Of a stretch of 64,000 nucleotides of DNA, positions 7,571 through 64,000 are shown piece by piece. Every line of letters starts with the position of its first letter. Positions within the stretch are counted from its first letter, which is position 1. Where the stretch lies: IMG/VR virus record IMGVR_UViG_3300035670_000008, positions 1 through 64,000 of that record. One strand, given 5' to 3'. A model generated the notes under the pieces. That model worked only from the letters and a program-made list of their open reading frames with translations, did not search any database and was not told the DNA's origin. Both the position numbers and the translations under genes were made by a program.

Positions 7571-8104
7571 CTAAAAGAAGGCTACCCAAGATGCATGGCT
7601 GACATTGCCGGCGTCAATTTGTTTTCTTCCGGGCAGTGTTACGGTGGTGACGCCGCTTACTAGATACACCAGTCCATTGATGTCATCGTAGGAGCTGCCG
7701 TTGGAGTTGCTGTCATGGTAGTAAAGCTCTAGGTTTAGCTTGGTCTTGTAGTAGAAGTCTTTGCAGACTCTTTCCCACGCAGCTACGAGTTCTTTTATTT
7801 TCTCTTTGATTAACTTGTCCAACTTATCATCGGTGAGTTGTTCGTCATCAAGATCACCTACTAGCGCTTCTGCTAGGCTCTCTTCGTCGCCATATTCAAG
7901 CGCGATATAAAGAGTTTCTTCATCGTGATTCGCTAGGTATTTCTGTATGGTATCCCAGCCGTCTAACTGTAGGGACTCCAGCCACTTAGCCTCTGCTACC
8001 CAGCCGGAGCTGGCTCCGTATCCCATTCCCATTAATCTTCCTCCATTACTAAGCTTAATCGAATGTCGTCGGCTCCGTGGAGCTCGTCTGCTTTGACTGA
8101 CCAC
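7571..8104 (-). CDS. hypothetical protein (start likely MGMGY near 8032)
   Basis: packed ORF. Confidence 0.6.
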   Translation of the reverse strand: MVSQSRRAPRSRRHSIKLSNGGRLMGMGYGASSGWVAEAKWLESLQLDGWDTIQKYLANHDEETLYIALEYGDEESLAEALVGDLDDEQLTDDKLDKLIKEKIKELVAAWERVCKDFYYKTKLNLELYYHDSNSNGSSYDDINGLVYLVSGVTTVTLPGRKQIDAGNVSHASWVAFF

Positions 8105-8316
8105 TCCTTCATCCCGTTGGGGGACTGGTGGAGATAGAAGGTGAAGCGGCGGGGGTCTTCTCCGTGTTCTTCGACAGTAACTTTACCGTTACTGAAGTCA
8201 ACTACGCGGGCGGGGATGGAAAAGATGCTTTCGTAGCCACCGCTGACGTAATCCCAGTCGGCGTAGATTAGGTGAACGGTGGCATGTAGATTATTCAAGT
8301 TGACTGTAGTTACCAT
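8032..8316 (-). CDS. hypothetical protein
   Basis: packed ORF. Confidence 0.55.
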   Translation of the reverse strand: MVTTVNLNNLHATVHLIYADWDYVSGGYESIFSIPARVVDFSNGKVTVEEHGEDPRRFTFYLHQSPNGMKEWSVKADELHGADDIRLSLVMEED

Positions 8317-8319
8317 GGT

Positions 8320-8679
8320 TTAAAAGTCTTGTAAAGGTTCTTCTTCTGCTTGCTCTTTGCTTTTTTCTGTCGCTTCGCCGCAAAGGAAGTCTAATACTCC
8401 GTCTGAGAAGCCCACTTTAGTTAGCTGGAAGTATTGTTCTAAGAGCCTCCTCATAGAGGCTTTATCCTTTTCTTCTAACGGGTCAGTTAGAACATTAATG
8501 ATTTCTTCTGAGCCTACCTGCGCTACGGCAGCTTCAATCTCTTCTTTGCTATGGCCTAAGGCTTTGATAAGACACATCAGCTGGGCGCTCAGCACCATAT
8601 TCAGCAGCGCATCTTCGTAATAAGCAGTCTCCACCTGTTTCTGGCGGTGGCTAGCAGCGGTTAGGGTTTGTTTCTTCAC
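8320..8679 (-). CDS. hypothetical protein
   Basis: packed ORF. Confidence 0.55.
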   Translation of the reverse strand: MKKQTLTAASHRQKQVETAYYEDALLNMVLSAQLMCLIKALGHSKEEIEAAVAQVGSEEIINVLTDPLEEKDKASMRRLLEQYFQLTKVGFSDGVLDFLCGEATEKSKEQAEEEPLQDF

Positions 8680-8834
8680 TGTGAGTTTGACTCCTTTAAT
8701 AACCGAATGATTTCATCTAGCTTGTCCGCGCAAGCATCTACGTCGCTACGCAGCCGTCCAAGTTCTTCATGGATGTCTTGGTGGTGGAAGCGTAGCGGCA
8801 CCTGCAGGAGCTTTTTAAGTAGCTTCTTCTTCAT
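8676..8834 (-). CDS. small hypothetical protein (52 aa)
   Basis: MKKKLLKKLLQVPLRFHHQ...; GTGA overlap with the next gene; below ORF-track cutoff. Confidence 0.5.
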   Translation of the reverse strand: MKKKLLKKLLQVPLRFHHQDIHEELGRLRSDVDACADKLDEIIRLLKESNSQ

Positions 8835-8870
8835 TGTTATACTGGGATTGTACTTTCATTGGTTTTTAAC

Positions 8871-9167
8871 ATGGGTCACAAGGTTAAAGTAAGTGCGGTT
8901 CCTCTTGAAGGCTCGGAGATTGCCCAAGGGTTTGATGTTCATTTGTTTGTGGATGACCAGCCGTTTGAAGCTACAAAGCTGACGATTGTAGCTGAAGCAG
9001 GCCGAGCAGTGGTGAAAGCTATTGTAGAGTTTGGGATTAGCGAACTTGAGTTTGACGGCTACCCGGAGACTGCTTTCTTAGCGTTGGGCAGCGAGTCTAA
9101 GTTGACTGCTGAGGAGTATAAGAAAGCTGTGGAAGACCTCCGCCGAGCTGCTTTGGGTTTAGAGTAG
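8871..9167 (+). CDS. hypothetical protein
   Basis: isolated plus-strand ORF from ATG 8871 that fills a gap. Confidence 0.6.
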   Translation: MGHKVKVSAVPLEGSEIAQGFDVHLFVDDQPFEATKLTIVAEAGRAVVKAIVEFGISELEFDGYPETAFLALGSESKLTAEEYKKAVEDLRRAALGLE

Positions 9168-9204
9168 AGCAACTTGAAGTTTTTGCGCATTGCGGCTTCT
9201 CTAT

Positions 9205-9564
9205 CTATTCCCATCGTTTCTGTCTCCATACATCTGTAATCGTTTGCTGGTGGTACCACTCCCAGATTGGTCGGCTGAAGTAGTAATTCCAGTCCAACTC
9301 AAAGCAGTAGCGGTCGTTCCGAATGGTTAGTGCTAAGTAAGATGGGTAGTCCAACCAACTATCAGACCAGCTGACCTTAAAGCAGACCCAACCAATCCAT
9401 AGCTGCGTCCAGGTGTAGCCATTGATAAAGGTCAGAGGGCCTAACTTCAAGGCGATACGGCCATCGCTACTTACTTTTAGAACGTTTTTAGCTTTACCCA
9501 TTGCCGTACTCCCGGGCGCTGCCTTCGCAGTAATCCCATTCGTCTTTATACCCGTCATGCCCAA
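9205..9564 (-). CDS. Trp-rich hypothetical protein
   Basis: ORF. Confidence 0.45.
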   Translation of the reverse strand: MGMTGIKTNGITAKAAPGSTAMGKAKNVLKVSSDGRIALKLGPLTFINGYTWTQLWIGWVCFKVSWSDSWLDYPSYLALTIRNDRYCFELDWNYYFSRPIWEWYHQQTITDVWRQKRWE

Positions 9565-9817
9565 AGTTTTTGGGCTCTGGTCTGTACCGAGCTACCACGT
9601 ATTCCCCAGACTCCGTCCTGAATAGGACTTCGTTTTCAGTGCGGCTGCCGCGGGCATACTCTTCTAAGTCTGCTTCTGCCAGTAGGGTGACGACGTTGTA
9701 AGCAGTCTTTCCTAAGAATTCCCCCCGCAGTAACCAGCTGTAGGGTTTGGAGGAGCCGGGCAGCCCATTGGGGAAGTGGATAAGTTGTTTACCGTTGGCT
9801 AAGTTAATCGTTTCCAT
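9494..9817 (-). CDS. hypothetical protein
   Basis: packed ORF. Confidence 0.55.
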   Translation of the reverse strand: METINLANGKQLIHFPNGLPGSSKPYSWLLRGEFLGKTAYNVVTLLAEADLEEYARGSRTENEVLFRTESGEYVVARYRPEPKNFGHDGYKDEWDYCEGSAREYGNG

Positions 9818-10268
9818 GTTCGTGTTCCTCCAGTTTCTGTAGTAGGTCTTTTACGTTACCTAAGGCTGCCCAAATCTCTTCGTCGCTGTACTTTAGGTGT
9901 ATAACAATTTGAAGGTCACCGTCATCATAGACCTTTAGTGCGGAGCTGCCAATTCGGTACTCTGGCTCGAAGTTCGTTAAAGGCGGGAGTTGATCTTCTT
10001 TCTCTTTGTAGTCTGCATCTTCATCTATGGCCAGTAGCTCCCAACTGACTCCGTATAAGTCTTCGGCCTTGAAGTACTGGACTTCTTTTAAGAACTTGCT
10101 GACTCTTAAGGCTTTTTCTAATGTTGCCCTGGGTAAGTCACACTCAATGTAATCGGGGGTAGAACCCCACTCGATGTTGCTGTAGGTGACGGCTGTAACG
10201 ACGACAGTGTTAATTTTGAATTTGTAGAATTGTTCCATAACTTTACATTTCAACAATTGAAGCGTCAC
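9804..10268 (-). CDS. hypothetical protein
   Basis: packed ORF. Confidence 0.55.
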   Translation of the reverse strand: MTLQLLKCKVMEQFYKFKINTVVVTAVTYSNIEWGSTPDYIECDLPRATLEKALRVSKFLKEVQYFKAEDLYGVSWELLAIDEDADYKEKEDQLPPLTNFEPEYRIGSSALKVYDDGDLQIVIHLKYSDEEIWAALGNVKDLLQKLEEHEHGND

Positions 10269-11005: not shown

Positions 11006-11611
11006 TTACGCATAAATTTTTTCAATCAATTGGTTGATTACAGCGCCAATACAGAAACCTTTTTCTTGGGGCTCATACCGAATCCAAGAGCAGCCAAGAA
11101 TACTCGTAATACAATCCTGACGCTCAATGTCTTTTTTGGTTCGATAGCTATGATACGGCTCATCGCACTCAACGGCGATACGGTGCTGAGGGAAGTAAAG
11201 GTCAATTCGATAGCCTGAAACGAAAAACTGTTCAATTGGGTTTAAGTGTTGAAAAGCAGACTTAATAATTCGGAGTGTGTCGGCTTCAATAGAAGAACGA
11301 TGTATGTTTAGGTTTATACCTAGCTGCTCTGCTACCAAACGAGCCTTTGGTTTTCGTGACTTTTGTAGTAATTGTTTTACGCCCGGTTCCCAAATCACAG
11401 TTATAAGTTGGGGTCCACCAAGGGTCTCCACTAACTGGAGACCCTTCCACTCTTCATCAATACTTCGTGCTAGCCGCGATCCATCGCTCTCTGCTTCTAG
11501 TACAGTGGCTAAGTCAGTAGCTACCACACCAAAATCAAATGTGCCCTCTGGGTGTTTAACGAATCGAACTTCTTGTTGGTCAAAGTGTTGAGCGATTAAT
11601 TCAATTGTCAT
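11006..11611 (-). CDS. Bro-N-like domain fused to a DUF559/Vsr-like PD-(D/E)XK endonuclease, Bro-3
   Basis: VVATDLATVL..KGLQLVETLGGPQ..VIWEPG..SRKPKA, then YRIDLYFPQHRIAVECDE..H..D.ER..WIRY. Confidence 0.85.
   Translation of the reverse strand: MTIELIAQHFDQQEVRFVKHPEGTFDFGVVATDLATVLEAESDGSRLARSIDEEWKGLQLVETLGGPQLITVIWEPGVKQLLQKSRKPKARLVAEQLGINLNIHRSSIEADTLRIIKSAFQHLNPIEQFFVSGYRIDLYFPQHRIAVECDEPYHSYRTKKDIERQDCITSILGCSWIRYEPQEKGFCIGAVINQLIEKIYA
11420..11446. repeat. in-frame 27-bp palindrome with perfect 11-bp arms in Bro-3 (encodes KGLQLVETL)
   Basis: aagggtctcca-ctaac-tggagaccctt. Confidence 0.95.
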
Positions 11612-11650
11612 TGAATACCTCCGAAAGGTTTAATGGTTTTCTTCTCTTCA

Positions 11651-11677
11651 AAGGGTGTCCACATTATGGACGTCCTT
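11651..11677. promoter_or_regulatory. intergenic 27-bp quasi-palindrome, putative operator of the Bro-3/Bro-2 unit
   Basis: aagggtgtcca-catta-tggacgtcctt; 19/27 identical to 11420..11446. Confidence 0.65.
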
Positions 11678-11686
11678 AGCTAGTTT

Positions 11687-11706
11687 GCTTTCTTTTTGCT
11701 TTTTTC
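11687..11706 (-). promoter_or_regulatory. conserved 20-bp upstream motif GAAAAAAGC-N5-GAAAGC
   Basis: identical to 32738..32757; one mismatch to 34898..34917. Confidence 0.6.
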
Positions 11707-11720
11707 AGTCGCTTCAATAG

Positions 11721-11748
11721 AAAAAGCTGCCCACCGAAGCGGGCAGCT
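11721..11748 (-). terminator. intrinsic terminator
   Basis: AGCTGCCCGC-TTCG-GTGGGCAGCT followed by a T-run on the minus strand. Confidence 0.8.
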
Positions 11749-11801
11749 ACCATACATACACAATTACCCACCGATATGAGGCCTCGGACGCGGGCCAGCG
11801 A

Positions 11802-12407
11802 TTAGGCTAAGTGCAGCTTGCGAGTCAACCACTTATACGCGGCGAATAGTCGGTAGCCAACTCGGAACTTCGCCGTTTCAGCTTCTATAAGCATGGTTGT
11901 AGCTAACTTCTGCTTGAAGATATCTGTGTACCGATAGACCTTGATGGGGTCTTTGCCACTGTCGTGGGCTGTGGCAGCTTCAGCAAAGGTATCAAACTTC
12001 TGCCGGTGCGTAGCTACACCGTAGATTAACTCCAGCGCGTTGTAGATTCCATAGTCAACTGCGAAGTGTGGTTTTTCACCAGGCCAGTTGAGCCCTTCGT
12101 AGCCCCGCTGCCACAACGGACGGACGCCCAGCTTCTTATTGGTCAACGAAGCCAGCACCCAGTCGAGCAGCACGATATTGGTGTCGGGCCAGTAGTAGCA
12201 GGTGCCTCCGTAGACTTCTGAGTACCACCAGAACCACCGCCCGATCCATAGTTTCTGTAACCACTGTGGCATCCCACCTACGATGTCGGGGTCGTAGATT
12301 AGGGGGCTGACGCTGGCATAAAGGTCGTCTTCAATCTTAACGATGTAGCCTGGGTACTCTGGTTCAATCTTCCCGCAGCACACGACGATTTCTGCTTTAG
12401 TTTCCAT
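11802..12407 (-). CDS. hypothetical protein
   Basis: packed ORF. Confidence 0.6.
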   Translation of the reverse strand: METKAEIVVCCGKIEPEYPGYIVKIEDDLYASVSPLIYDPDIVGGMPQWLQKLWIGRWFWWYSEVYGGTCYYWPDTNIVLLDWVLASLTNKKLGVRPLWQRGYEGLNWPGEKPHFAVDYGIYNALELIYGVATHRQKFDTFAEAATAHDSGKDPIKVYRYTDIFKQKLATTMLIEAETAKFRVGYRLFAAYKWLTRKLHLA

Positions 12408-15419: not shown

Positions 15420-15629
15420 TCATTGTTCTGCTGCGTCTTCTATTGTCTCAGTGTCGTAGAATTCCAAGCTGAAGTGTCCAGCATCGACGATGCTCTTCAC
15501 TAGGCTTTTGGCTTCTTTCAGCAATGCGTCTAGTTCTTCTTCAGTTTCCGCGGCGTTGTCGCTATGCACGGGGAAGTTAAGACTAAAGTAGTGCACATAC
15601 TTTGGTACGTAGTTAGGTGCGTTTTTCAT
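15420..15629 (-). CDS. hypothetical protein
   Basis: packed ORF. Confidence 0.55.
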   Translation of the reverse strand: MKNAPNYVPKYVHYFSLNFPVHSDNAAETEEELDALLKEAKSLVKSIVDAGHFSLEFYDTETIEDAAEQ

Positions 15630-15631
15630 GA

Positions 15632-15982
15632 TTAGATTTTACTTACTCGCACAGGGATGCGACCTTTCTTCAGCGGGGCTAAGCGGCGAAAGGCAGCTTT
15701 ACTTAAGTCCAGGCTGCAGTGGCAGCGGTCGGTAACTGTAACTACCACGCTTCGGTTCTTGTAGCGGACGCGGAGCCGCGTGCCCAGGCGGTAGGTTGGG
15801 TGTGCAGCTACCATAGCGGACTGGCTGAAGCGGCGTCCGTTGGCCATGCGCCGTCCATTGTAGTAGTTGCTGTAGTAGGTAGCACTAGCACGAACGGTTC
15901 GTGCGTCCACAGGGGCCTCAGGAATAAGGCAGATACCAGTTAGGGTACATAGCGCAATGGCTAGGGTTTTCTTTAAGCTCAT
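15632..15982 (-). CDS. RlpA-like double-psi beta-barrel protein with signal peptide
   Basis: ATYYS..YNGRRMANG..F...MVAAHPT..LGTRLRV..VTVTDR..LDLSKAAF; start MSLKK at 15982, downstream of a hairpin. Confidence 0.85.
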   Translation of the reverse strand: MSLKKTLAIALCTLTGICLIPEAPVDARTVRASATYYSNYYNGRRMANGRRFSQSAMVAAHPTYRLGTRLRVRYKNRSVVVTVTDRCHCSLDLSKAAFRRLAPLKKGRIPVRVSKI

Positions 15983-16471: not shown

Positions 16472-16762
16472 TTAGCGTTGGGGTGGGATGGACTTTTTAA
16501 GTAGTTCGGTTAGCTTCCACTTTAGGTAGCTGTAGTATAGGTAGCTAACAACCATGCCGGGCAGTAAACAGATACGTTCAATGTGCTCCATGAACGTTAG
16601 CTTCCTGTCCGGCTCAAACAACTCCCGGCGGTCGAAGGAGTTGTGGACGACTATTAATGACCCATCTATAGATATCTGTACCTTGGGCCGGCACGGGCAT
16701 AAAACGCTTTCGACATGCTCGTAGTAATCATCCACAGGGACTACATGTAAGGTGGGCTTCAC
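16472..16762 (-). CDS. hypothetical protein
   Basis: HVVPVDD..EH...CPCRP...VVHNSFDRRE pattern. Confidence 0.65.
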   Translation of the reverse strand: MKPTLHVVPVDDYYEHVESVLCPCRPKVQISIDGSLIVVHNSFDRRELFEPDRKLTFMEHIERICLLPGMVVSYLYYSYLKWKLTELLKKSIPPQR

Positions 16763-16992
16763 TCCGTAGCCTCCTTTTCTATCAACTGTTTCTTGCTAGC
16801 TTTAAGTTGCTTCCACAGAGCCTTAATTTGTTTGTAGGCTTCGGCTGACTCAAGCTTGCCCCCGCTCTCCAAACTAACGATAATCGATACCCGATTCTGG
16901 AATTCCTGGAGGTTCGCATCAAAAGCTAGGTTCTGGGGAGTGAACCGACCGTAGTAGCGGGACTGGGGATACAGGAAGCTGTCTTTATCCAT
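16759..16992 (-). CDS. conserved cyanobacterial small protein (host-like)
   Basis: FLYPQSRYYGRFTPQNLAFDANLQEF..RV....LE.GGK....AY.QIK.LWKQLK.SKK, recognised as a cyanobacterial family. Confidence 0.8.
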   Translation of the reverse strand: MDKDSFLYPQSRYYGRFTPQNLAFDANLQEFQNRVSIIVSLESGGKLESAEAYKQIKALWKQLKASKKQLIEKEATE

Positions 16993-16995
16993 TTG

Positions 16996-17548: not shown

Positions 17549-18153
17549 AGGGTTTCCTCCAATACAGCGCGTTCTTTACCTAAGTCACGGTTGACTGCCC
17601 GTTCGCTAGAGAATTTATCACCATAGCGGGTATACAGTTTCACCAGGTTCTTTCTGAACACTGGGGAAAGTCCGCTGTTATTGTCGGAAACGATCCAGGG
17701 GATGTGCATATACCAGGTCAAATCGCCCAATTCTTCAATAATGTTAATCCCGTCGAGTTCTTCTTTTTCAACGATAGCTCGGTAAAGAGCGTTGACCAGC
17801 TCGGCAGCTTCCGTGGCTACACCTAAGATGGAGTGAATCAACCGGCGGTCGATTAGCACGTCGTCCCAGCTATCTACTGTTATGTAAGGGTTACCATACT
17901 CACTCCTGTGGTGGTCGGCTTGTTCTTCGACAGTGGTGTATTTGTTATCCCCGTAGAACAAACTCTTCTTCAATTCGTCCAAGCCGTCGCTAATCTCTAG
18001 GAACTGCTCCATAATAGCCATGGCCGTAGCTATGGGGTAGCGGTCGCCATGCCAAGAGTTCGACAAAGTGCAGCTAGCCCCTTCACAGTACTCTTGCCAA
18101 GTGATGTCTTCGCCATTAAGGCACTTTTCAATTACTGGGTGCATGTCTTTCAA
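17545..18153 (-). CDS. mazG: MazG-like nucleotide pyrophosphohydrolase
   Basis: HSILGVATEAAEL...EELGDLTWY...N..KL..RY. Confidence 0.85.
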   Translation of the reverse strand: MKDMHPVIEKCLNGEDITWQEYCEGASCTLSNSWHGDRYPIATAMAIMEQFLEISDGLDELKKSLFYGDNKYTTVEEQADHHRSEYGNPYITVDSWDDVLIDRRLIHSILGVATEAAELVNALYRAIVEKEELDGINIIEELGDLTWYMHIPWIVSDNNSGLSPVFRKNLVKLYTRYGDKFSSERAVNRDLGKERAVLEETL

Positions 18154-56195: not shown

Positions 56196-57542
56196 TTACT
56201 CGCCGGTTAACCGGTCGGATACATCTTTAGGTATCTTAGCAGCTACGAAGGTGCGGCACTGCTGGGAATAAGGCACAGGGTCAATAAATAAACACCAGCG
56301 CCGGTCTAGGGTTGAGTAGGCTTGGGTTAACGTCACCAGTGACTTGGGAGCGTCCTTAGACGGCAGTGCCCACTCATCTTCCAAATCATCCTCGTAGTCA
56401 TCGGACTCGTAAATACTCTGAGCTTCGCTGTCTTTGCTATGCTTGAGCATCGTGGACAGGGCCTGCTTTAAGTATTGATAGTTGACGACGATAGGCTGCC
56501 AAGGATCGTCTAAACCGTCCGGGGCTGCGTAGGTACTGAACGACCGCTCGCGCCCCAATATATCAGCCTGTTTGGTAATCAACAGCCGGGTGTTATCCAT
56601 ATCTTTCAGAAGGAGGTCTTCTGAGTTAGCCTTCTTCTTAGGCGTCTGGATGATGATTGCTTCGTAGAGCTGCTTTAGGTCAAAGACCCGTGTCGCTTCG
56701 TTCTCTAAAGGCGGGCTAGCTAGGATAACCGGAGCTACTTTGCTGACAGCTGGGTAGATATAGGACTCCATGACTGGGAGCGTAATCCCTCCGAGGTCTC
56801 CCTGAAAACGGATTTGAGTTGGCTGCTCTAAGTCGTTTACTAATATCACAACTGTGGGGTCGTCCTTGAATACTGAAGATACCCGAGGCAGATGACGGGC
56901 ACTAATCCCTAGGTTAATCTCTACGTCCTCTGGATGTAGCCGAGGTACCATCCCTTTGATATAGCTAATGCCGCTCTTACCAGTGAACTCAGTGCAGTAT
57001 AAGCTTAACGAATCATAGGTCTCGTCTTTTAACCAGACGGCTCGGTCGCTGGTGTCACCCTTACATTTGGAGAAGGTGTTGATGTAGTTGCAAGCCTTAC
57101 GGAATGCCCAGCCGTCAGTAAGCGCGCTTAACTTAACCCAATCGTATGTAGGCTCCTCGAAGGTTTCGATGTCTCCGCTATAAGTGTTGGACTCCAGGTT
57201 CGGCGGGTTGGCTGTATCCGTCATACATTGAACGGAGATAACATTCCGATTTGTACCTTTAAGCCGCAGACCGTGACGCTTCCACACATCATTAGAAAGT
57301 CGGCTCTTTAGGTCGTCTCCGTCTAATAAGAACTTAGTGCCGACCACACCGAATCCAGTGATGTAGCGGCTATACCAAGCCCCACCGATTAAATAGCTGG
57401 TGAGTTTACACCGCTCCGAATCGACCTGTTCTAGTAAGATATAGCGAAGGATATTACCCGGCTCTCGAGTCGTGTCCGGGTCGTACAGATAACTTAGCGC
57501 GGTGATTAACTCTTGCGCGTTACCGAAATCAATATAATTCAT
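56196..57542 (-). CDS. putative divergent beta sliding clamp (DnaN-like)
   Basis: ELITAL...ILRYILLE....KLT...FLLDGDDL and IVVNYQYLKQAL resemble DnaN domains I and III. Confidence 0.45.
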   Translation of the reverse strand: MNYIDFGNAQELITALSYLYDPDTTREPGNILRYILLEQVDSERCKLTSYLIGGAWYSRYITGFGVVGTKFLLDGDDLKSRLSNDVWKRHGLRLKGTNRNVISVQCMTDTANPPNLESNTYSGDIETFEEPTYDWVKLSALTDGWAFRKACNYINTFSKCKGDTSDRAVWLKDETYDSLSLYCTEFTGKSGISYIKGMVPRLHPEDVEINLGISARHLPRVSSVFKDDPTVVILVNDLEQPTQIRFQGDLGGITLPVMESYIYPAVSKVAPVILASPPLENEATRVFDLKQLYEAIIIQTPKKKANSEDLLLKDMDNTRLLITKQADILGRERSFSTYAAPDGLDDPWQPIVVNYQYLKQALSTMLKHSKDSEAQSIYESDDYEDDLEDEWALPSKDAPKSLVTLTQAYSTLDRRWCLFIDPVPYSQQCRTFVAAKIPKDVSDRLTGE

Positions 57543-57999: not shown

Positions 58000-58665
58000 C
58001 TAGTAGTTCCAACGGATGCGACCAGGTCTAAGATCCAAATGGCAAAAGCCTTTTTTAGCTCCATACCCTAATGCTTTATCCCACTTGCCGTCCAACCACT
58101 TCTGGAATTGATAGATGTCCTTTCCGACTGGGTAGATGTCAGCAGCACTGCCGTTGATGTGCTGGCTGTTGGACACACCACCAACGGCTCGGTTGACTGC
58201 AGGCGGGCGGTACCAGCTAGTTACGCCAATAGGGCCTCCCCAAGCTTCACGAACTTCGTCCAATTCCTTAGCTAACCGTAGGATGTTGTTAATTACATTT
58301 GCATCTCTGGGTATCCGGCGAGGGTCACCTTTGGTCACGTCGTTGACGGTGAAGTATTTGCAAATCCGTTGAGCAGGATTCTTCCAATTGATTTCATCTG
58401 CGCTAGGTATTTTACCAACCTGCTCAGCTAAGTCTATCAGCAGCTTTGCGGAGCCGGGGCCTAGTAATTTAGGCTCGCCTTGGTTCGTAGCCAGCTTAAA
58501 GCGAATGAACGCTGCCTTTGTTTTAGGCCCGCAGACCCCATCTACGTGGTCTAGGTAACCTGCTTTAGTAAGGGCCGCTTGGAAGTCCTTACAGAGCTCC
58601 TCGTCAGCATTTAATTCATCTAGGGAGATGACTTTTTTACCATTGGCGAAGGTAGCTAACTTCAT
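58000..58665 (-). CDS. endolysin: peptidoglycan-binding domain + peptidase M15
   Basis: Q.AL...GY...VDG.CGPKT; TSWYRP...N..VGG..NSQH..G.AADI, HLDLR. Confidence 0.9.
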   Translation of the reverse strand: MKLATFANGKKVISLDELNADEELCKDFQAALTKAGYLDHVDGVCGPKTKAAFIRFKLATNQGEPKLLGPGSAKLLIDLAEQVGKIPSADEINWKNPAQRICKYFTVNDVTKGDPRRIPRDANVINNILRLAKELDEVREAWGGPIGVTSWYRPPAVNRAVGGVSNSQHINGSAADIYPVGKDIYQFQKWLDGKWDKALGYGAKKGFCHLDLRPGRIRWNY

Positions 58666-58868
58666 GGTTGAGGGCCTTTAGTAGGAGGTTTACGTTGAGT
58701 TCTGTTAACAGCTCTTAAGTCAGGGCTTAAGACGGCTAAGCCTGAAGACATAAAGGTATAGAAGGCGTTGTTCCACACATCCTTTACTCGGTCGGGCACG
58801 TAGATTGAGGATACTAACAATGCTATAGATACTCCTAGCAGGCTAGCCCCCAGGGCAGTTTGGTTCAA
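58662..58868 (-). CDS. putative holin-like membrane protein
   Basis: two hydrophobic segments, basic tail, overlaps the endolysin start. Confidence 0.45.
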   Translation of the reverse strand: MNQTALGASLLGVSIALLVSSIYVPDRVKDVWNNAFYTFMSSGLAVLSPDLRAVNRTQRKPPTKGPQP

Positions 58869-58903
58869 TGGTGTAGCTCCGAAGCTCTACACCATCAACC
58901 TAG

Positions 58904-59122
58904 TTAATACTGGGCGATTTCTAGTAGGTGCTTGGCTTCCTCTACGGATCGGTACATCATATCGTAGACGTTCTCACAAGGCGTGCCTGCTTGGATGTGG
59001 GCGCAGTAAATCCTTAGGGAAGCGTCCTCTAATTTATTCAGCGGGGCATCGGGGTCTAGTGAATACCCGTAAACTCTAGCCCCACTGCGTTGGGCGAATA
59101 GGTCTCTCGTCAAAGCATCCAT
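58904..59122 (-). CDS. hypothetical protein
   Basis: packed ORF. Confidence 0.5.
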   Translation of the reverse strand: MDALTRDLFAQRSGARVYGYSLDPDAPLNKLEDASLRIYCAHIQAGTPCENVYDMMYRSVEEAKHLLEIAQY

Positions 59123-59124
59123 AT

Positions 59125-59307
59125 TTAGTCATTGTGATAAGGGATAGCCCCGATATCTACTTCGTGGGTGTCTAAGAGCTCTACAGGCTCTTCAGGCAAC
59201 AACTTTTCCTGAGCTACTATGTCGATAGCTTCCTGGAGGTTGCTCGCCTTGATTTTAACGATACCGGCGCATTCGTAGATAACGGGGATTTTGAAGACTC
59301 GCTTCAT
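59125..59307 (-). CDS. small hypothetical protein
   Basis: IKASNLQEAI pattern. Confidence 0.5.
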   Translation of the reverse strand: MKRVFKIPVIYECAGIVKIKASNLQEAIDIVAQEKLLPEEPVELLDTHEVDIGAIPYHND

Positions 59308-59340
59308 AGGTGAAATGGCTACACTATACTATTCTTTAGC

Positions 59341-60348
59341 TTAGTGTGCCCAGACAGGGGCGATAGCGAACTCGGCTTTGCCTTTAATCTCAGAGCCCAT
59401 TCGTTGGAACATCTTCGTCTGAGTATCTTCCATGACTTGTTTGCACAGCTTCGCCCAATGTAAAGCCTCTTCGTCGTAGCCAAACTTAATCTTGGTGACG
59501 ACGCCGTCCTCGATTTTGCATCCATCCCAATCAACCCAGACTTTGCCGGGGGCTTGAATGAGTACTTCATCGTGACATTGACCTATTAGGGCAGGCGGGG
59601 TTTCTAGGTGGGCGTATGGCTCGAAAGTTTCATCCAACGTAATCATTGATTCTTTTGTTTGTATGCTTGAGAGTCCCTGCACTTGGAAATTAACGGCAGC
59701 TCGTTCTGCGGATTCACCCTCTTTTCCGCCTGCTCTTTCTTCTGCTACCCAGCGATTTACGTTATAACCATAAGGTAGAACGGCGTAGCCGCGGGCTGCT
59801 GCAATCCGACCTACCTCCTCCGCCCACTCATAGTAGCCAGTGTAGGTATTACGGTGGTTCTTAACCCATCCTTCCGCAATCTCTAACTTAACATGGTTTC
59901 GTTCGCTAATAGATTGAACGGTTGATAGGTATAGCATCGCAAAATTCAAAGTTTTTGCTGTGTCTCTGGGGCATCTCTTATCTCCAAAGAGAAAAGCGCG
60001 GGCGATGGCTTCCCACTCGTCTTCAGTTTTACCTACGAATCTTTCAGGAGCTATACAGTTAACGGCTGTTAACGTGTGGTAGTCAGAACGAGGGTTGTTA
60101 TATACTTTCCCTTCAGGAGTAGTTAGTTTTTCTGGAACTAGGAAAGACTCACACATAATTGGGTCTTTCGAGACGACCGCAGCCACACGGATTTCCTGGC
60201 TAGCAAAATCACAGCTAATGATGACCCCACGTTGTGTGCAGAAGCCGTTGCGGGGGTTACTGACAAACTCTAGCTGCTCTACAGTAGGTGCCTGGGCTAC
60301 GCCGGCTGTGGTGCCATTAGATTTAGGTCTGGTTAGTAGTTTACGCAT
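59341..60348 (-). CDS. polA: family A DNA polymerase, C-terminal catalytic part
   Basis: motif A DFASQEIRV, motif B RDTAKTLNFAMLY, N.QVQG, motif C HDE; start MRKLL at a TAATG overlap. Confidence 0.9.
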   Translation of the reverse strand: MRKLLTRPKSNGTTAGVAQAPTVEQLEFVSNPRNGFCTQRGVIISCDFASQEIRVAAVVSKDPIMCESFLVPEKLTTPEGKVYNNPRSDYHTLTAVNCIAPERFVGKTEDEWEAIARAFLFGDKRCPRDTAKTLNFAMLYLSTVQSISERNHVKLEIAEGWVKNHRNTYTGYYEWAEEVGRIAAARGYAVLPYGYNVNRWVAEERAGGKEGESAERAAVNFQVQGLSSIQTKESMITLDETFEPYAHLETPPALIGQCHDEVLIQAPGKVWVDWDGCKIEDGVVTKIKFGYDEEALHWAKLCKQVMEDTQTKMFQRMGSEIKGKAEFAIAPVWAH

Positions 60349-60548
60349 TAAACAAAGATATATCGGTGGTCTGGGATTTGACGGATGAGCTCCACGCATT
60401 CGTGGGCAGCTTCCTCGTCTACAAAGATTTTAGCCTTTGAGCGGTCGAATGTTAGCACTGGGCTGATGAACCCACGATTCTTCACAGCACCAATGATAAA
60501 CGCGGCGGCTCCCTGATAAAAAAACGATGGACGAAAATATTTGAACAT
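60348..60548 (-). CDS. small hypothetical protein
   Basis: coupled to the polA C-terminal gene by TAATG. Confidence 0.5.
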   Translation of the reverse strand: MFKYFRPSFFYQGAAAFIIGAVKNRGFISPVLTFDRSKAKIFVDEEAAHECVELIRQIPDHRYIFV

Positions 60549-60587
60549 AGGCTAGCTTGGGTAATAGAACAGTTTTCTAAGTTTGCT

Positions 60588-60920
60588 ATGGTTTCTTTTT
60601 TCTCTTTTCTTTTAGGTATAGGGGTTTCACTTTTAGTACTAGGTCTTACTGAAGCAGTTATTAAACCACTTGCGACAAAGACGACTAAATACTATATCAA
60701 GGCTTATGTGCCTAAATTATTAGACTATTTAGATGAGTTCTTGCCGGTATGGTTTGGTAACCTGTCGGAGGAAGAAATTAGACAAGAACTTATCCGATTC
60801 CTTTGGACAGAGGCTACAGAACAAGGCGAGCGTATTGAAGAAACTCAAGTAGAGGAGATAATCAACACTGCAGAATCAACTTACTCTTTCTTTAAGAACG
60901 CGTCTAAACTATTAAGCTAA
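60588..60920 (+). CDS. membrane-anchored hypothetical protein
   Basis: N-terminal transmembrane helix; TAATG-coupled to the next gene. Confidence 0.6.
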   Translation: MVSFFSFLLGIGVSLLVLGLTEAVIKPLATKTTKYYIKAYVPKLLDYLDEFLPVWFGNLSEEEIRQELIRFLWTEATEQGERIEETQVEEIINTAESTYSFFKNASKLLS

Positions 60921-61984
60921 TGTACGAACAACTATCTTTATCTTTGGAAGAAGTCGACCTCGATATTATATTAGACGATGCCGCCCTCCAGAAGGAAAAA
61001 GAAAAGTATAACTTACTCCAACGTAAATATAAGACTGCTTTACGGGAGTTAAGCGATACAAAGCAGAGTCTAGAGATTGCTTTAAGCCTTAAAGCCCAAA
61101 GAGAAAAACTGTCGGTGTGCGCCATTCAAACTAGCGCCTCCGAGACCGAATTACCAGAAGCTATTCCCATCATTATGTGGAGCGACTGGCACGTCGGTGA
61201 GCGGGTAGCCCCCGAGACCGTCGAGCACGTTAACTACTATAGTCCAGAGGTGTGTAGCCGTCGAGCAGACATCCTTTTTGAGAACACCGTCAATACGTTG
61301 CTGATGCTTAAGCATAGCTATACCATCCGTAACGTTATCATCTGGCTTGGCGGGGACTTTATCTCGGGGCATATCCACGAAGAGCTAATGGAGTCTAATT
61401 ATCTATCTCCTCCACAGGAGATACTCTACGTAGCTAACATCCTCAAGCGGGGTATTAACAAGGTCTGTGAGCAAGCTGGAATAGAGGTGGTTCACATCCC
61501 TTGTAACTTTGGTAATCACGGGCGGTTGACCCATAAGACGAGAGCTAGCACAGGGCATATTAACAACCTTGAGTGGATGATGTACTCTTTTCTAGCTCAA
61601 GATTTTGAGGATAACCCAAAGGTCACGTTTATGATTGCTGATGGGCCGATGATTCACTATGAAGTGTTTGACAAGCGCCTACGGTTTACCCATGGAGATG
61701 CAGTTAGCTACAGCGGTAGTGGGATGGGCGGGCCTTCTAATTCCATTCTCCGCTGGATCAACAAGCAGGACGCTAGTTCAATCGACTTTAAAGCCGACAT
61801 GACCTTTCTAGGGCATTTTCATACGACTATATTCGACCGCCGCTTTACTGTAAATAACTGTTTAATTGGAGCTACGCCGTACTCTATCCGGTGCGGCTTC
61901 CCGATTGAGCCAGCAGACCAGGCATTGGTACTTCTAGAGAAAGCTAAGGGGTTTACTTTACGTTATACTGTTGCTGCGGAGTGA
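60920..61984 (+). CDS. calcineurin-like metallophosphoesterase/nuclease with N-terminal coiled coil
   Basis: SDWHVGE, GGD, GNHGR, HGD, GHFH. Confidence 0.88.
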   Translation: MYEQLSLSLEEVDLDIILDDAALQKEKEKYNLLQRKYKTALRELSDTKQSLEIALSLKAQREKLSVCAIQTSASETELPEAIPIIMWSDWHVGERVAPETVEHVNYYSPEVCSRRADILFENTVNTLLMLKHSYTIRNVIIWLGGDFISGHIHEELMESNYLSPPQEILYVANILKRGINKVCEQAGIEVVHIPCNFGNHGRLTHKTRASTGHINNLEWMMYSFLAQDFEDNPKVTFMIADGPMIHYEVFDKRLRFTHGDAVSYSGSGMGGPSNSILRWINKQDASSIDFKADMTFLGHFHTTIFDRRFTVNNCLIGATPYSIRCGFPIEPADQALVLLEKAKGFTLRYTVAAE

Positions 61985-62185
61985 GTTCAAAGCCTGTCTC
62001 CCTTTTTTGGTTAGTTTATACGGGGCCTTACCGAAAATAAGGCCCTTGTTTTTTAGGGTTATAAGGGCCTGAGCGATGTCCGAGCTATCCGTTAGGCAAT
62101 CGACTGGATAGGCAATGCTATCATTTACGCCGAAAGCCAAGAGGACTTCAGTCTCCGCCGGGTTGAGTTGGTTGAATGACTTCAC
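61958..62185 (-). CDS. small winged-helix protein
   Basis: AL.TLKNKGLI....YKLTKKGRQAL. Confidence 0.55.
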   Translation of the reverse strand: MKSFNQLNPAETEVLLAFGVNDSIAYPVDCLTDSSDIAQALITLKNKGLIFGKAPYKLTKKGRQALNSLRSNSIT

Positions 62186-63530
62186 TAGGGAAAAACTCTT
62201 CTTTAGGCATGGTTATCTTACAAGTAGTTCTGCCAGATTGTTGCTGCATGTTGGGAGTTGCGGCCGACATCCGTGACGTAGCGGCGCCCAGCTGGTCATA
62301 AGAGCAATGGATTCGCCCCGTTGCTACGTTGATATACTTCCGTAAGTCCATACCATCCTGTTTAGTGAGCTTTTTGAACTTTAAGATGGCTTTTACTACC
62401 GGGGTTAGTTGTAGCAAGGCGGATTCTTCCAACTCCAGGAACTCGCTGTAGAGTTCAGCCTCTTCTACGTCGACGAATACCTCCTGAGCCGTCTGCTGTC
62501 GGTTCTCGGAGGCGGCGAAGATATCTAAGAGTTCGCAGGCTCGGCGTAGACCCTCTGCCTGGGTGGAGTCAAACTTTTCAAGTTTCAACCCAACGTTAAT
62601 GAGTTTTAGCAGCTCGGTGCTAGACCGAAGGGTGCTAAGCGCTCGACGTGTGGGTTGTTCTTTACCGTTACCTAAATCAATCGGCTGGTCGAGGTTGAAC
62701 TCGTAGCTAAGATAGACTGCGACTTCCTCCATCTCTTGTCTAATTCCTTCCTGGAAGTAACCCATCATCTTCCGGTCGGCTGGCATACCAATGTATTCCA
62801 TTTTGGCGATGACGGAGACTAGGCGCATCTCTCTATCTAAGGACTCCTGCATCCCTAGACCCCAATCGTCGCTGTGGTTACCAGTTTGATTCAGGTCGGT
62901 ATGCGGCATGGGAGTAACTAACGTCTTAGTTTGTATCTCCCGGATGGGAAACAAATACTGTACGTCGTTAGCCGCGTAGGTTAACTTACCCAACCAGTAT
63001 TCGTTCTCCAGGTTTCTACCGCTTAAGTCTAGCGCCCAGCTACTGACTCGCTCTTCTTTCTTCCCGGTGATACGGACGTTGAGTAGCTCTCGACAGATGT
63101 CAGCGTAGCCGTGACCTAACTGTCTAGCGACTTTAGAACCAGTAGCATTACCGATAAGCTTACTAGCCACAACAACATCAAAGACATTCTTGAACCATAC
63201 TCCAAACTCGTTATATAAGAACTTGAGGTCGAATCTCAGGTTTGCTCCCAGGATTCGGTCGGTCTTTAGTAGTAAATCTCGTAGCGGGGCTCTATCGTAA
63301 TCTAGAGCCCGTAGCCACGCTAAGTCAAAAATAAGGGGCTGCCCTTCCGCCCGCTTGAGGATTAGAAGGCTAATCTCAGCTGTATGGGCGTCTAAAGCAG
63401 ACCCTACGGTTTTATACGTCCCGCGAACGGAAGTCTCTACGTCGAGGGCCAGTGCCGCTGTGGAGCTGCTGAGCATTTCAACAGCGGCTTGGTAGTCCTC
63501 TAGGGTGGTGATGTATTTAAAGGAACTCAT
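62148..63530 (-). CDS. polA: family A DNA polymerase, N-terminal part (3'-5' exonuclease + thumb)
   Basis: ExoI DVET, ExoII N.RFD, ExoIII YAAND, ME..G, GRIH.SY.Q..AATSRMS...PNMQQ. Confidence 0.9.
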   Translation of the reverse strand: MSSFKYITTLEDYQAAVEMLSSSTAALALDVETSVRGTYKTVGSALDAHTAEISLLILKRAEGQPLIFDLAWLRALDYDRAPLRDLLLKTDRILGANLRFDLKFLYNEFGVWFKNVFDVVVASKLIGNATGSKVARQLGHGYADICRELLNVRITGKKEERVSSWALDLSGRNLENEYWLGKLTYAANDVQYLFPIREIQTKTLVTPMPHTDLNQTGNHSDDWGLGMQESLDREMRLVSVIAKMEYIGMPADRKMMGYFQEGIRQEMEEVAVYLSYEFNLDQPIDLGNGKEQPTRRALSTLRSSTELLKLINVGLKLEKFDSTQAEGLRRACELLDIFAASENRQQTAQEVFVDVEEAELYSEFLELEESALLQLTPVVKAILKFKKLTKQDGMDLRKYINVATGRIHCSYDQLGAATSRMSAATPNMQQQSGRTTCKITMPKEEFFPSEVIQPTQPGGD

Positions 63531-64000
63531 CGAGCTCAGGGATAGGGTACAGTTGGGAAGAAGCCCGCCCGAGGGTTTTGTAGGGTTTCTTCTTCAGGAA
63601 TTTGTCGAGAGCCCACATAGACCGTAGATACAAATCTTGGCTGGTGGCGAACTCACGGTGATGGCGGCGGTTAAGAATATGCCCACGGAGCAGGATAGCA
63701 ACGGACTCTTCGTCTCCCGAGTATAACCCAGTATCAACGACTTCCATGAAGCGAGCTAGGACAGCTTTATCCTCTCCTAATACTAGAGCCCGAACGATAA
63801 TCGAACGGTAGGGGGCATAGGAGATATTAGACGTCCCGAAGCGCTGTGCTGCAAAAGCAATCTCTTCGCTGTATTTCTCGTAGGTCTCGATGATTTTAAC
63901 CCGGCTGACCTTCTTCATATCCCGGATGTTACTGCCGTAGGTGAAGTACAGGTACTTAGCAATGGACAGCTGGTGTTTATTGGTCTCCACCCCGATAATC
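63517..64000 (-). CDS. hypothetical protein, N-terminus outside the window
   Basis: frame stays open to the window edge. Confidence 0.55.
   Translation of the reverse strand, partial: IIGVETNKHQLSIAKYLYFTYGSNIRDMKKVSRVKIIETYEKYSEEIAFAAQRFGTSNISYAPYRSIIVRALVLGEDKAVLARFMEVVDTGLYSGDEESVAILLRGHILNRRHHREFATSQDLYLRSMWALDKFLKKKPYKTLGRASSQLYPIPELDEFL

Follow-up and report, generated by a model that had tools for sequence, protein, structure and literature searches.

The locus described here raises the question of how a family A DNA polymerase (PolA), an enzyme of a class that is among the best studied, serves as a workhorse of biotechnology and almost always consists of a single chain, can be encoded by a phage in two separate genes. 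It lies in the IMG/VR virus record IMGVR_UViG_3300035670_000008, a linear record of 216,563 bp with an estimated completeness of 96% (CheckV), the first 64 kb of which (64,000 nucleotides) were analyzed and are called the window. The N-terminal gene (N part) and the C-terminal gene (C part) are divided within the polymerase domain itself. The best reading, to which we give a probability of about 0.8, is a noncovalent heterodimeric PolA with a composite active site.

One polymerase cut once within its catalytic domain

The N part was matched by the Pfam family DNA_pol_A_exo1 (PF01612, E 4.6e-17) and by positions 62-148 of DNA_pol_A (PF00476), and the C part by positions 140-343 of the latter profile (E 1.2e-20), with the Pfam cut-off of PF00476 exceeded by both halves. 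PHROG 17 (DNA polymerase) was divided at the same place, positions 654-989 falling to the N part and 1006-1231 to the C part; further matches were to PHROG 31382 for the N part and to PHROGs 2573 and 35406 for the C part. As the two profile matches are contiguous, they indicate a single polymerase with one cut, and as the N part reaches position 148 of PF00476, it contains the thumb and motif 2. The preliminary description of this DNA, made from the letters and the open reading frames (ORFs), had claimed a PolA split into two genes 1.8 kb apart, with the C part resuming where the N part ends after PNMQQ; the ORF, Pfam and PHROG mapping bore out both statements.

Thumb, palm and fingers do not share one polypeptide, the N part having its stop at 62148 and the C part a new start at 60348. 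The longest ORF of the C part extends over 59341-60399 on the minus strand; the ATG at 60348 is the likely true start because the relatives (12 homologs) all begin there. By arithmetic, products of roughly 51 kDa (N part) and 37 kDa (C part) are predicted. The 1.8 kb from stop to start hold four ORFs of 75 (-), 354 (+), 110 (+) and 66 (-) amino acids, two of them on the strand opposite to the polymerase genes, as had been noted earlier. The features of the locus are listed in Table 1.

Table 1. Features of the split polymerase locus, in window coordinates
Feature	Position	Strand	Description
PolA N part	62148..63530	(-)	460 amino acids; 3'-5' exonuclease, thumb, motif 2 (TGR..PNxQQ..R)
Exo I	63429-63452	(-)	DxE; D30/E32
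Exo II	63219-63245	(-)	NxxxFD; N97/F100/D101
Exo III	62952-62978	(-)	YxxxD; Y185/D189
Motif 2	62229..62282	(-)	Residues 417-434; last canonical polymerase element before the break; R420, N427, Q429 invariant
N-part tail	62151..62228	(-)	Residues 435-460; first 13 are the conserved proximal half of a clade-specific loop
75-amino-acid ORF in the break	61958..62185	(-)	Winged-helix candidate
Terminator-like hairpin	62022..62046	(+)	Just 3' of the 354-amino-acid gene; 9-bp stem then T run; from a consensus scan
354-amino-acid gene	60920..61984	(+)	PHROG 284 'exonuclease', E 3.7e-34; conserved and inverted also in L005, L006
110-amino-acid ORF	60588..60920	(+)	Hydrophobic N-terminus; conserved in L005, L006; dN/dS 0.12-0.24 where computable
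66-amino-acid ORF	60348..60548	(-)	TAA stop overlaps the C-part ATG (TAATG); 80-91% identical in L005, L006
PolA C part	59341..60348	(-)	335 amino acids from the conserved start; palm and fingers; motifs A, B, C; C-terminal WAH
C-part head	60259..60348	(-)	Residues 1-30; basic start, then distal loop half into NPRNGF
Motif A	60187..60216	(-)	Catalytic Asp47; D47, Q51, E52 invariant among homologs
Motif B	59929..59967	(-)	R128, K132, F136, Y140 in invariant columns; aligns to Taq 659-671
Motif C	59563..59580	(-)	H259, D260, E261 nearly invariant; aligns to Taq HDE

Between them, the two genes hold the exonuclease motifs and the polymerase motifs 2, A, B and C of a family A polymerase with proofreading. 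The residues of Exo I to Exo III and of motif 2 were invariant or nearly so in an alignment with 17 homologs, and, with the conservation of motifs A to C, the earlier observation that both parts keep their catalytic motifs holds. Motif 2 of the N part carries what we take to be the equivalents of Klenow R668, Q677 and R682. When aligned to the Klenow and Taq polymerases, the break falls downstream of PNLQNIP and upstream of the strand leading into the motif A aspartate, between Taq ~588, where the N part ends after PNLQNIP, and Taq 595, where the C part takes up the RRAF strand; in Klenow numbering this is presumably between ~683 and ~687.

The break lies inside a loop of the polymerase subfamily

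The short stretches that border the break had been taken for newly acquired tails, a view that was not upheld. In fused relatives, in which the polymerase is a single ORF, a 35- to 50-residue insertion follows motif 2, whereas canonical PolA lacks it; at its beginning this insertion is similar to the N-part tail of the window, and at its end to the C-part head leading into NPRxxF. Because the fused relatives carry the loop in one piece, the tails are the two halves of a pre-existing loop: a long surface loop was already a feature of the subfamily, and it was within this loop that the gene broke. The C-part head is conserved in relatives, and its NPRNGF is the equivalent of Klenow RIRQAF.

The last 13 residues of the N-part tail are a window-specific extension. 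The N part passes the stop of its closest relatives (after ..LFT) by 13-14 codons (62148-62189), and the extension overlaps the start of the next ORF, that of 75 amino acids, by 38 nt in another frame. It looks like the product of a lost stop codon.

The same split in relatives

A word-based search returned 12 stand-alone C parts and about 48 clusters of stand-alone N parts, at 29-75% identity, and the N-part clusters (at least 29% identity) without exception, 48 of 48, end 16-48 residues after the N.QQ motif. When the C part was used as the query of an exhaustive search, 1001 matches were obtained at E<=1e-3, the best of which were mostly 290-350 amino acids long and started just before the NPRxxF strand; a related-locus search of viral contigs with the C-part protein alone gave no match. 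The pattern found is that of an intradomain PolA split, with an N part of ~430-480 amino acids, a C part of ~290-350 amino acids and the break between motifs 2 and A. Synteny in related phages, a comparison proposed in the preliminary description, showed the same split in the related loci L005 to L008 and in others.

Within the clade, the halves are as close as about 0.1 kb and as distant as more than 9 kb, the latter in L011. In phage Ma-LMM01 the gap is occupied by one ORF of 51 amino acids, and in L008 by one of 108 amino acids. L007 has two small ORFs there, the window has four, and L005 and L006 have six (a methyltransferase among the added ones); in the contig of P0010, twelve ORFs, with ThyX and PhoH among them, take up 5.7 kb.

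The fused relatives comprise P0088 and P0098 (~746 amino acids each), P0183, P0151, P0190, P0200, P0172 and the PolA of Microcoleus phage My-WqHQDG. In the latter (L009:2902-5001), motif C reads YDG for HDE, the catalytic Asp being kept and the His and Glu replaced. In a phylogeny built from the N-part region, P0088 and P0098, both fused, formed the sister group of the main split clade, P0183, also fused, lay within that clade, and the split lineage of Ma-LMM01 stood among fused forms, a pattern that calls for no fewer than three changes of state. A single origin of the split was considered and abandoned, as this enlarged tree, to which the fused relatives had been added, requires these changes; an approximately unbiased (AU) test, in which a single split clade was not rejected (p 0.094), applies to a smaller, earlier data set. 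Because of the long branches and the AU result, we claim only that the loop was opened, closed or both more than once, and the number and direction of the fission and fusion events are uncertain. As judged by sequence comparison, the cut is ancient, widespread and repeatedly made or undone.

Integrity and maintenance of the locus

Selection on the halves was analyzed against L005 and L006. Synonymous sites were saturated (proportion of synonymous differences, pS, 0.72-0.78; of nonsynonymous differences, pN, 0.13-0.20, for both halves), and the ratio of nonsynonymous to synonymous substitution rates (dN/dS), where computable, was ~0.05-0.06 for both. The low dN/dS together with saturated pS implies that the halves are maintained and are not debris. 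It is very improbable that the polymerase is a decaying pseudogene lying in pieces while the phage uses a polymerase of the host or one not yet found. The record is not closed, which gives such a reading some room, but every catalytic residue is kept, purifying selection acts on both halves, the split has been maintained across the N-part clusters at identities down to 29%, and no other family A match, no PolB and no DnaE were detected in the 216.5-kb record. An intact polymerase elsewhere with these parts in decay, which the preliminary description had named as contrary evidence, was accordingly not found.

The same applies to misassembly. In each of three runs, the stretch 58800-63900 is unbroken in the Logan contigs, which show neither differences nor joints; all three runs come from a single study and could be the source data, for which reason they are not taken as independent support. 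The recurrence of the split in many other, unrelated samples is the stronger argument against a misassembly. Elements that interrupt genes and can be excised are known in cyanobacteria, and an excision of the gap DNA during infection would restore one gene. Such an excision, or an assembly artefact, is nonetheless hardly credible as the origin of the split: the spanning contigs and the unrelated samples speak against an artefact, the borders of the gap showed no direct repeats and the gap no recombinase, on which grounds an excisable element was rejected, and the halves, if joined, would still hold a stop and a start codon.

Splicing of RNA or protein

An intron or another device at the RNA level (group I or II intron, trans-splicing or translational bypass) would allow one protein to be made across the gap. 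Group I introns do interrupt the C part in relatives. In L012, an intron (11493-11953, 79.3 bits) lies inside motif A, with exon 1 ending in ISCDYAG; in L014, one (2437-2732, 67.5 bits) follows the first exon; and in L013, three sub-threshold group I matches (15542-15858, 16735-16995 and 17710-17901, E 3e-7 to 5e-5) flank HNH and LAGLIDADG genes at the exon borders. The tool that detected RF00028 in these relatives, with 79.3 and 67.5 bits as the positive control, yielded no group I or II intron in 58500-64000 of the window (5.5 kb) at E<=1 and none in the gap alone at E<=10. Furthermore, the N part has its own stop after the conserved tail, the C part opens with a conserved ATG and a head of 30 residues, and half of the four gap genes run in the opposite direction; the gaps of relatives vary and hold ordinary cargo genes. 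A single protein made by such a device is therefore highly unlikely. A spliced mRNA across the gap, which according to the preliminary description would overturn the two-gene reading, is made unlikely by the missing intron match, the separate starts and stops and the inverted module.

Ligation of the halves after translation by a split intein, as in the cyanobacterial DnaE, would be the equivalent at the protein level, and relatives do have inteins only a few residues from the break. Complete inteins are inserted in the N parts of relatives at GRxS/C (the slash marks the junction), in the alignment about 8 residues upstream of the break, namely in P0022, P0024-P0026, P0035, P0037-P0042 and P0044-P0055; they are either mini-inteins of ~155 amino acids or larger ones of ~330 amino acids with an HNH_3 domain. 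A second site, at PN/C, is occupied in P0183 (L014:485-2470). Each of these inteins is in one piece and sits within the N part, away from the break itself. Neither half in the window had a Pfam match to HINT or intein domains, and the window allele is intein-free, with Ala at the +1 position, which is Cys or Ser in most aligned relatives whether an intein is present or not. The 13 conserved tail residues and the 30 head residues are, even taken together, far too short to form a HINT fold, Cys437 is not conserved, and the head ends in SN/P without Cys, Ser or Thr at +1; moreover, in the fused relatives tail and head are ordinary loop sequence. We regard a split intein as very improbable. Trans-splicing had come into consideration through a 609-amino-acid N part with HINT matches and was discarded, as the inteins proved to be complete and inside the N part. 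The earlier remark that no intein or intron motifs are visible was confirmed by the Rfam search, with no intron match in 58500-64000, and by the Pfam search, with no intein match in either half.

With both inteins and group I introns interrupting it in relatives, the polymerase gene of this phage group is a hot spot for mobile elements. Another replication gene of the group probably carries an intein as well: upstream of the polymerase in L007, a relative of 220 kb, a RecA-like recombinase of 691 amino acids (7852-9927) has an Intein_splicing match.

Predicted assembly of the two chains

Residues 205-460 of the N part were co-folded with the 335-residue C part in three runs, with three controls. 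The interface score ipSAE was 0.82 in all three runs and 0.01 in the best of the controls; at least 67% of the contacts were common to the runs, and the predicted local distance difference test (pLDDT) of the partner was at least 82. Of 78 solved complexes, 51 attain the mark used for this score, as do 2 of 108 mismatched pairs. The predicted interface includes N-part residues 431-450 and C-part residues 23-39, which suggests that the two loop halves would pair across the chains, perhaps as a ribbon of two strands.

The prediction also bears on the idea that the halves act independently, the N part as an exonuclease or DNA-binding protein and the C part as a minimal polymerase, alone or with another partner. 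In databases the two Ma-LMM01 proteins carry different labels, 'exonuclease' for one and 'DNA polymerase' for the other, and within the clade the halves can be separated by more than 9 kb. On the other side, the N part retains invariant thumb and motif 2 elements that are of no use to a stand-alone exonuclease, the C part lacks thumb and motif 2, and the modeled complex is one PolA fold. An N part also accompanies the C part in every locus or contig with a C part that was examined, and the window genome has both. Independent action is improbable on these grounds.

Under the preferred reading of a two-chain PolA, a replicative family A polymerase gene would have undergone fission into two polypeptides that reassemble noncovalently into one PolA fold. 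The cut would lie at the tip of the 35- to 50-residue surface loop between motif 2 (PNxQQ) and the strand to motif A, its proximal half forming the C-terminal tail of the N part and its distal half the N-terminal head of the C part. Exonuclease and thumb would come from the N part, together with the contacts that motif 2 makes to primer and minor groove; motifs A, B and C of the C part would contribute the aspartates that bind the metal ions and the helix that binds the dNTP, and neither half would be expected to polymerize alone. Splicing of RNA or protein would not be involved: translation of each half would begin at a start of its own, with that of the C part presumably coupled to the upstream 66-amino-acid ORF through the TAATG overlap. 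The inverted two-gene module between the halves suggests that they are probably transcribed separately, in putative transcription units of their own.

Several points weigh against this reading. The co-fold demonstrates that a PolA fold is completed in the model, which is a different matter from binding in the cell or a useful affinity, and the score may reflect a familiar fold, because the solved PolA structures are single chains. The locus was present in none of the RNA runs searched, and a convincing promoter for the C part was not detected (10 promoter-like sites versus 5.8 +/- 2.2 expected, none well placed). The record being linear and 96% complete, a second polymerase may lie in the missing part. 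For the window phage as for the whole clade, assembly and activity are inferred. The two-subunit PolA proposed in the preliminary description is nevertheless supported by the co-fold suggested there (0.82 versus 0.01), by selection and by recurrence of the split, and assembly and polymerization in the cell are what would follow from it.

Genes in the gap and around the polymerase

All four gap ORFs are kept in two relatives, L005 and L006, and no HNH, GIY-YIG or LAGLIDADG match was obtained for them in the Pfam and PHROG searches. Homologs of the 75-amino-acid ORF occur between or near the halves in L005, L006, L007, L008, L012 and L013; in L006 the start of the homolog overlaps the N-part stop, and the homologs in L008 and L012 are squeezed in between the halves, with an overlap on either side. 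Its AlphaFold2 model (pLDDT 79) matched SSV1 F-93, MarR and PadR in fold (TM-score ~0.7, E>=0.02), and weak Pfam and PDB sequence matches pointed to the winged-helix fold class as well. As a homolog is absent from L011 and the fused loci and not detectable in Ma-LMM01, the ORF is common and not obligatory. Its candidacy as an obligatory subunit was rejected for its absence from L011 and its nondetection in Ma-LMM01. It is a matter of speculation whether the ORF is a relic of an inserting element or an accessory regulator. A broader scenario, which we consider rather doubtful, would combine three elements: the ORF as a relic of the element that made the cut and perhaps now a third component of the cassette, the loop as a permissive site of fission and fusion opened and closed several times, and the gap, bordered by two halves that must be inherited together, as a safe harbor for cargo of up to more than 9 kb. 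The ORF might then help in assembly, bind DNA or act as an autoregulator balancing the halves.

For the 354-amino-acid gene, the nuclease role is suggested by PHROG 284, with no Pfam or PDB sequence match; by eye its motifs resemble a calcineurin-type phosphoesterase, for which the same Pfam and PDB sequence searches gave no match. The 66-amino-acid ORF showed a dN/dS of 0.05 against L005 and L006 and no family match in the Pfam and PHROG searches. The number of terminator-like sites in the region was not above the shuffled expectation. A Methyltransf_24/TylF-type methyltransferase (L005:7450-8028 and L006:7390-7968) is one of the two gap genes that the window lacks. The comparison of the window with L005 and L006 shows that cargo genes have been gained or lost recently in the gap.

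Downstream of the C part, after three small ORFs, an endolysin gene (58000-58665, (-); Peptidase_M15_3, a weak PG_binding_1 match and PHROG 894) sits among the replication genes, as it does in L005, L006 and the P0010 contig. A gene for a 448-amino-acid protein (56196-57542, (-)) without a family match is conserved downstream of the polymerase in L005 to L008. The suggestion that this protein is a sliding clamp bound through the hydrophobic pair at the C-terminus of the N part was dropped as unsupported. Its AlphaFold2 model was poor (pLDDT 48) and the hhalign probability against gp176, the clamp homolog of Ma-LMM01, was 0.05; the hydrophobic pair is not needed as a clamp motif, because the in-line loop of the fused relatives explains it. 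The scan of 1-64000 revealed no tRNA genes in the window, its G+C content was 0.45-0.51, and the adenine-thymine skew was negative over most of it.

Implications

In this phage clade, which among cultured phages is closest to cyanophages, a polymerase cut through the catalytic domain has long been retained; one of its chains bears the primer and minor-groove contacts, and the other bears the catalytic carboxylates. An active heterodimer would provide a natural, evolution-tested split site of PolA between motifs 2 and A, useful for split-enzyme and conditional-assembly designs, and the locus is a system for asking how stoichiometry is set when the halves are transcribed apart. For annotation, such N parts should not be called stand-alone exonucleases, and polA phylogenies and marker surveys that expect one ORF will mishandle these genomes.

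Comparison with known systems

The same break as in the window is present in Ma-LMM01, in gp180 ('3'-5' exonuclease', 427 amino acids) and gp178 ('DNA polymerase', 320 amino acids), and in the MaMV phages. As in the window, the cut follows xxQQxS and a short tail with a final hydrophobic pair and precedes N(S/P)Rxx...DFSSQE, and a small ORF occupies the break. The identity between the two systems is 26-27%. Unlike in the window, the gap is ~0.1 kb, the 51-amino-acid ORF is not detectably related to the winged-helix ORF, and gp178 has almost no N-terminal head; the fission in Ma-LMM01 may be independent of that in the main clade. Both halves of the Ma-LMM01 polymerase are transcribed as middle-class genes (PMC5780444), and replication surveys among the searchable papers treat it as an ordinary PolA and leave the split unremarked (PMC3201878). 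The intradomain cut is already there in Ma-LMM01 and dozens of uncultured relatives and is essentially undescribed.

The fused proteins P0088, P0098 and P0183 belong to the same PolA subfamily, with 33-43% identity to the N part, whereas My-WqHQDG and the cluster representative P0135, also single ORFs, share ~24-28% with it. P0088, P0098, P0183 and My-WqHQDG have the tail and head elements and the synteny of RecA followed by polymerase in common with the window; P0183, unlike the window, carries an intein and a group I intron.

The PolB of Methanothermobacter is encoded in two genes. A split family B polymerase has likewise been described in a chimallivirus (PMC13648687). In such cases, as in the window, a replicative polymerase is formed from two separately encoded pieces without an intein, but the family and the cut point are different.

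An essential enzyme of Aeromonas phage Aeh1 was reportedly split by inserted DNA, and its fragments are said, in work by Friedrich et al. from 2007, to reassemble with no RNA or protein splicing. As to mechanism, this enzyme and the split family B polymerases come closest to the window. The likeness to the window is that of a phage enzyme in pieces without splicing, assembly being a prediction for the window. The gene concerned in Aeh1 is nrdA, for ribonucleotide reductase, which is split by mobE (Friedrich et al., as cited in PMC5418858). The insert in Aeh1 is a recognizable homing endonuclease, whereas the ORF in the break of the window is the 75-amino-acid winged-helix candidate without a nuclease domain; the split in Aeh1 concerns one phage, whereas that of the window type appears ancient and widespread.

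Two further groups of phages have PolA in two pieces. In clade B of the T7-like cyanophages (S-TIP37), it is encoded in two ORFs (PMC12695635; bioRxiv 10.1101/325100), and in LUZ24-like Pseudomonas phages, parts I and II of the DNA polymerase are separated by ~2 kb of small ORFs (PMC3890496). The cuts in both groups lie at the boundary of exonuclease and polymerase (171 and 546 amino acids in UFV-P2), so that each product is a whole domain, in contrast to the window, where the cut lies inside the polymerase domain and the active site would be shared by two chains. The split is not categorically new, given the same cut in Ma-LMM01 and the other split phage polymerases known. What the window adds is a cut that is, by all appearances, ancient, widespread and repeatedly made or undone, placed in a pre-existing loop and predicted to yield a composite active site.

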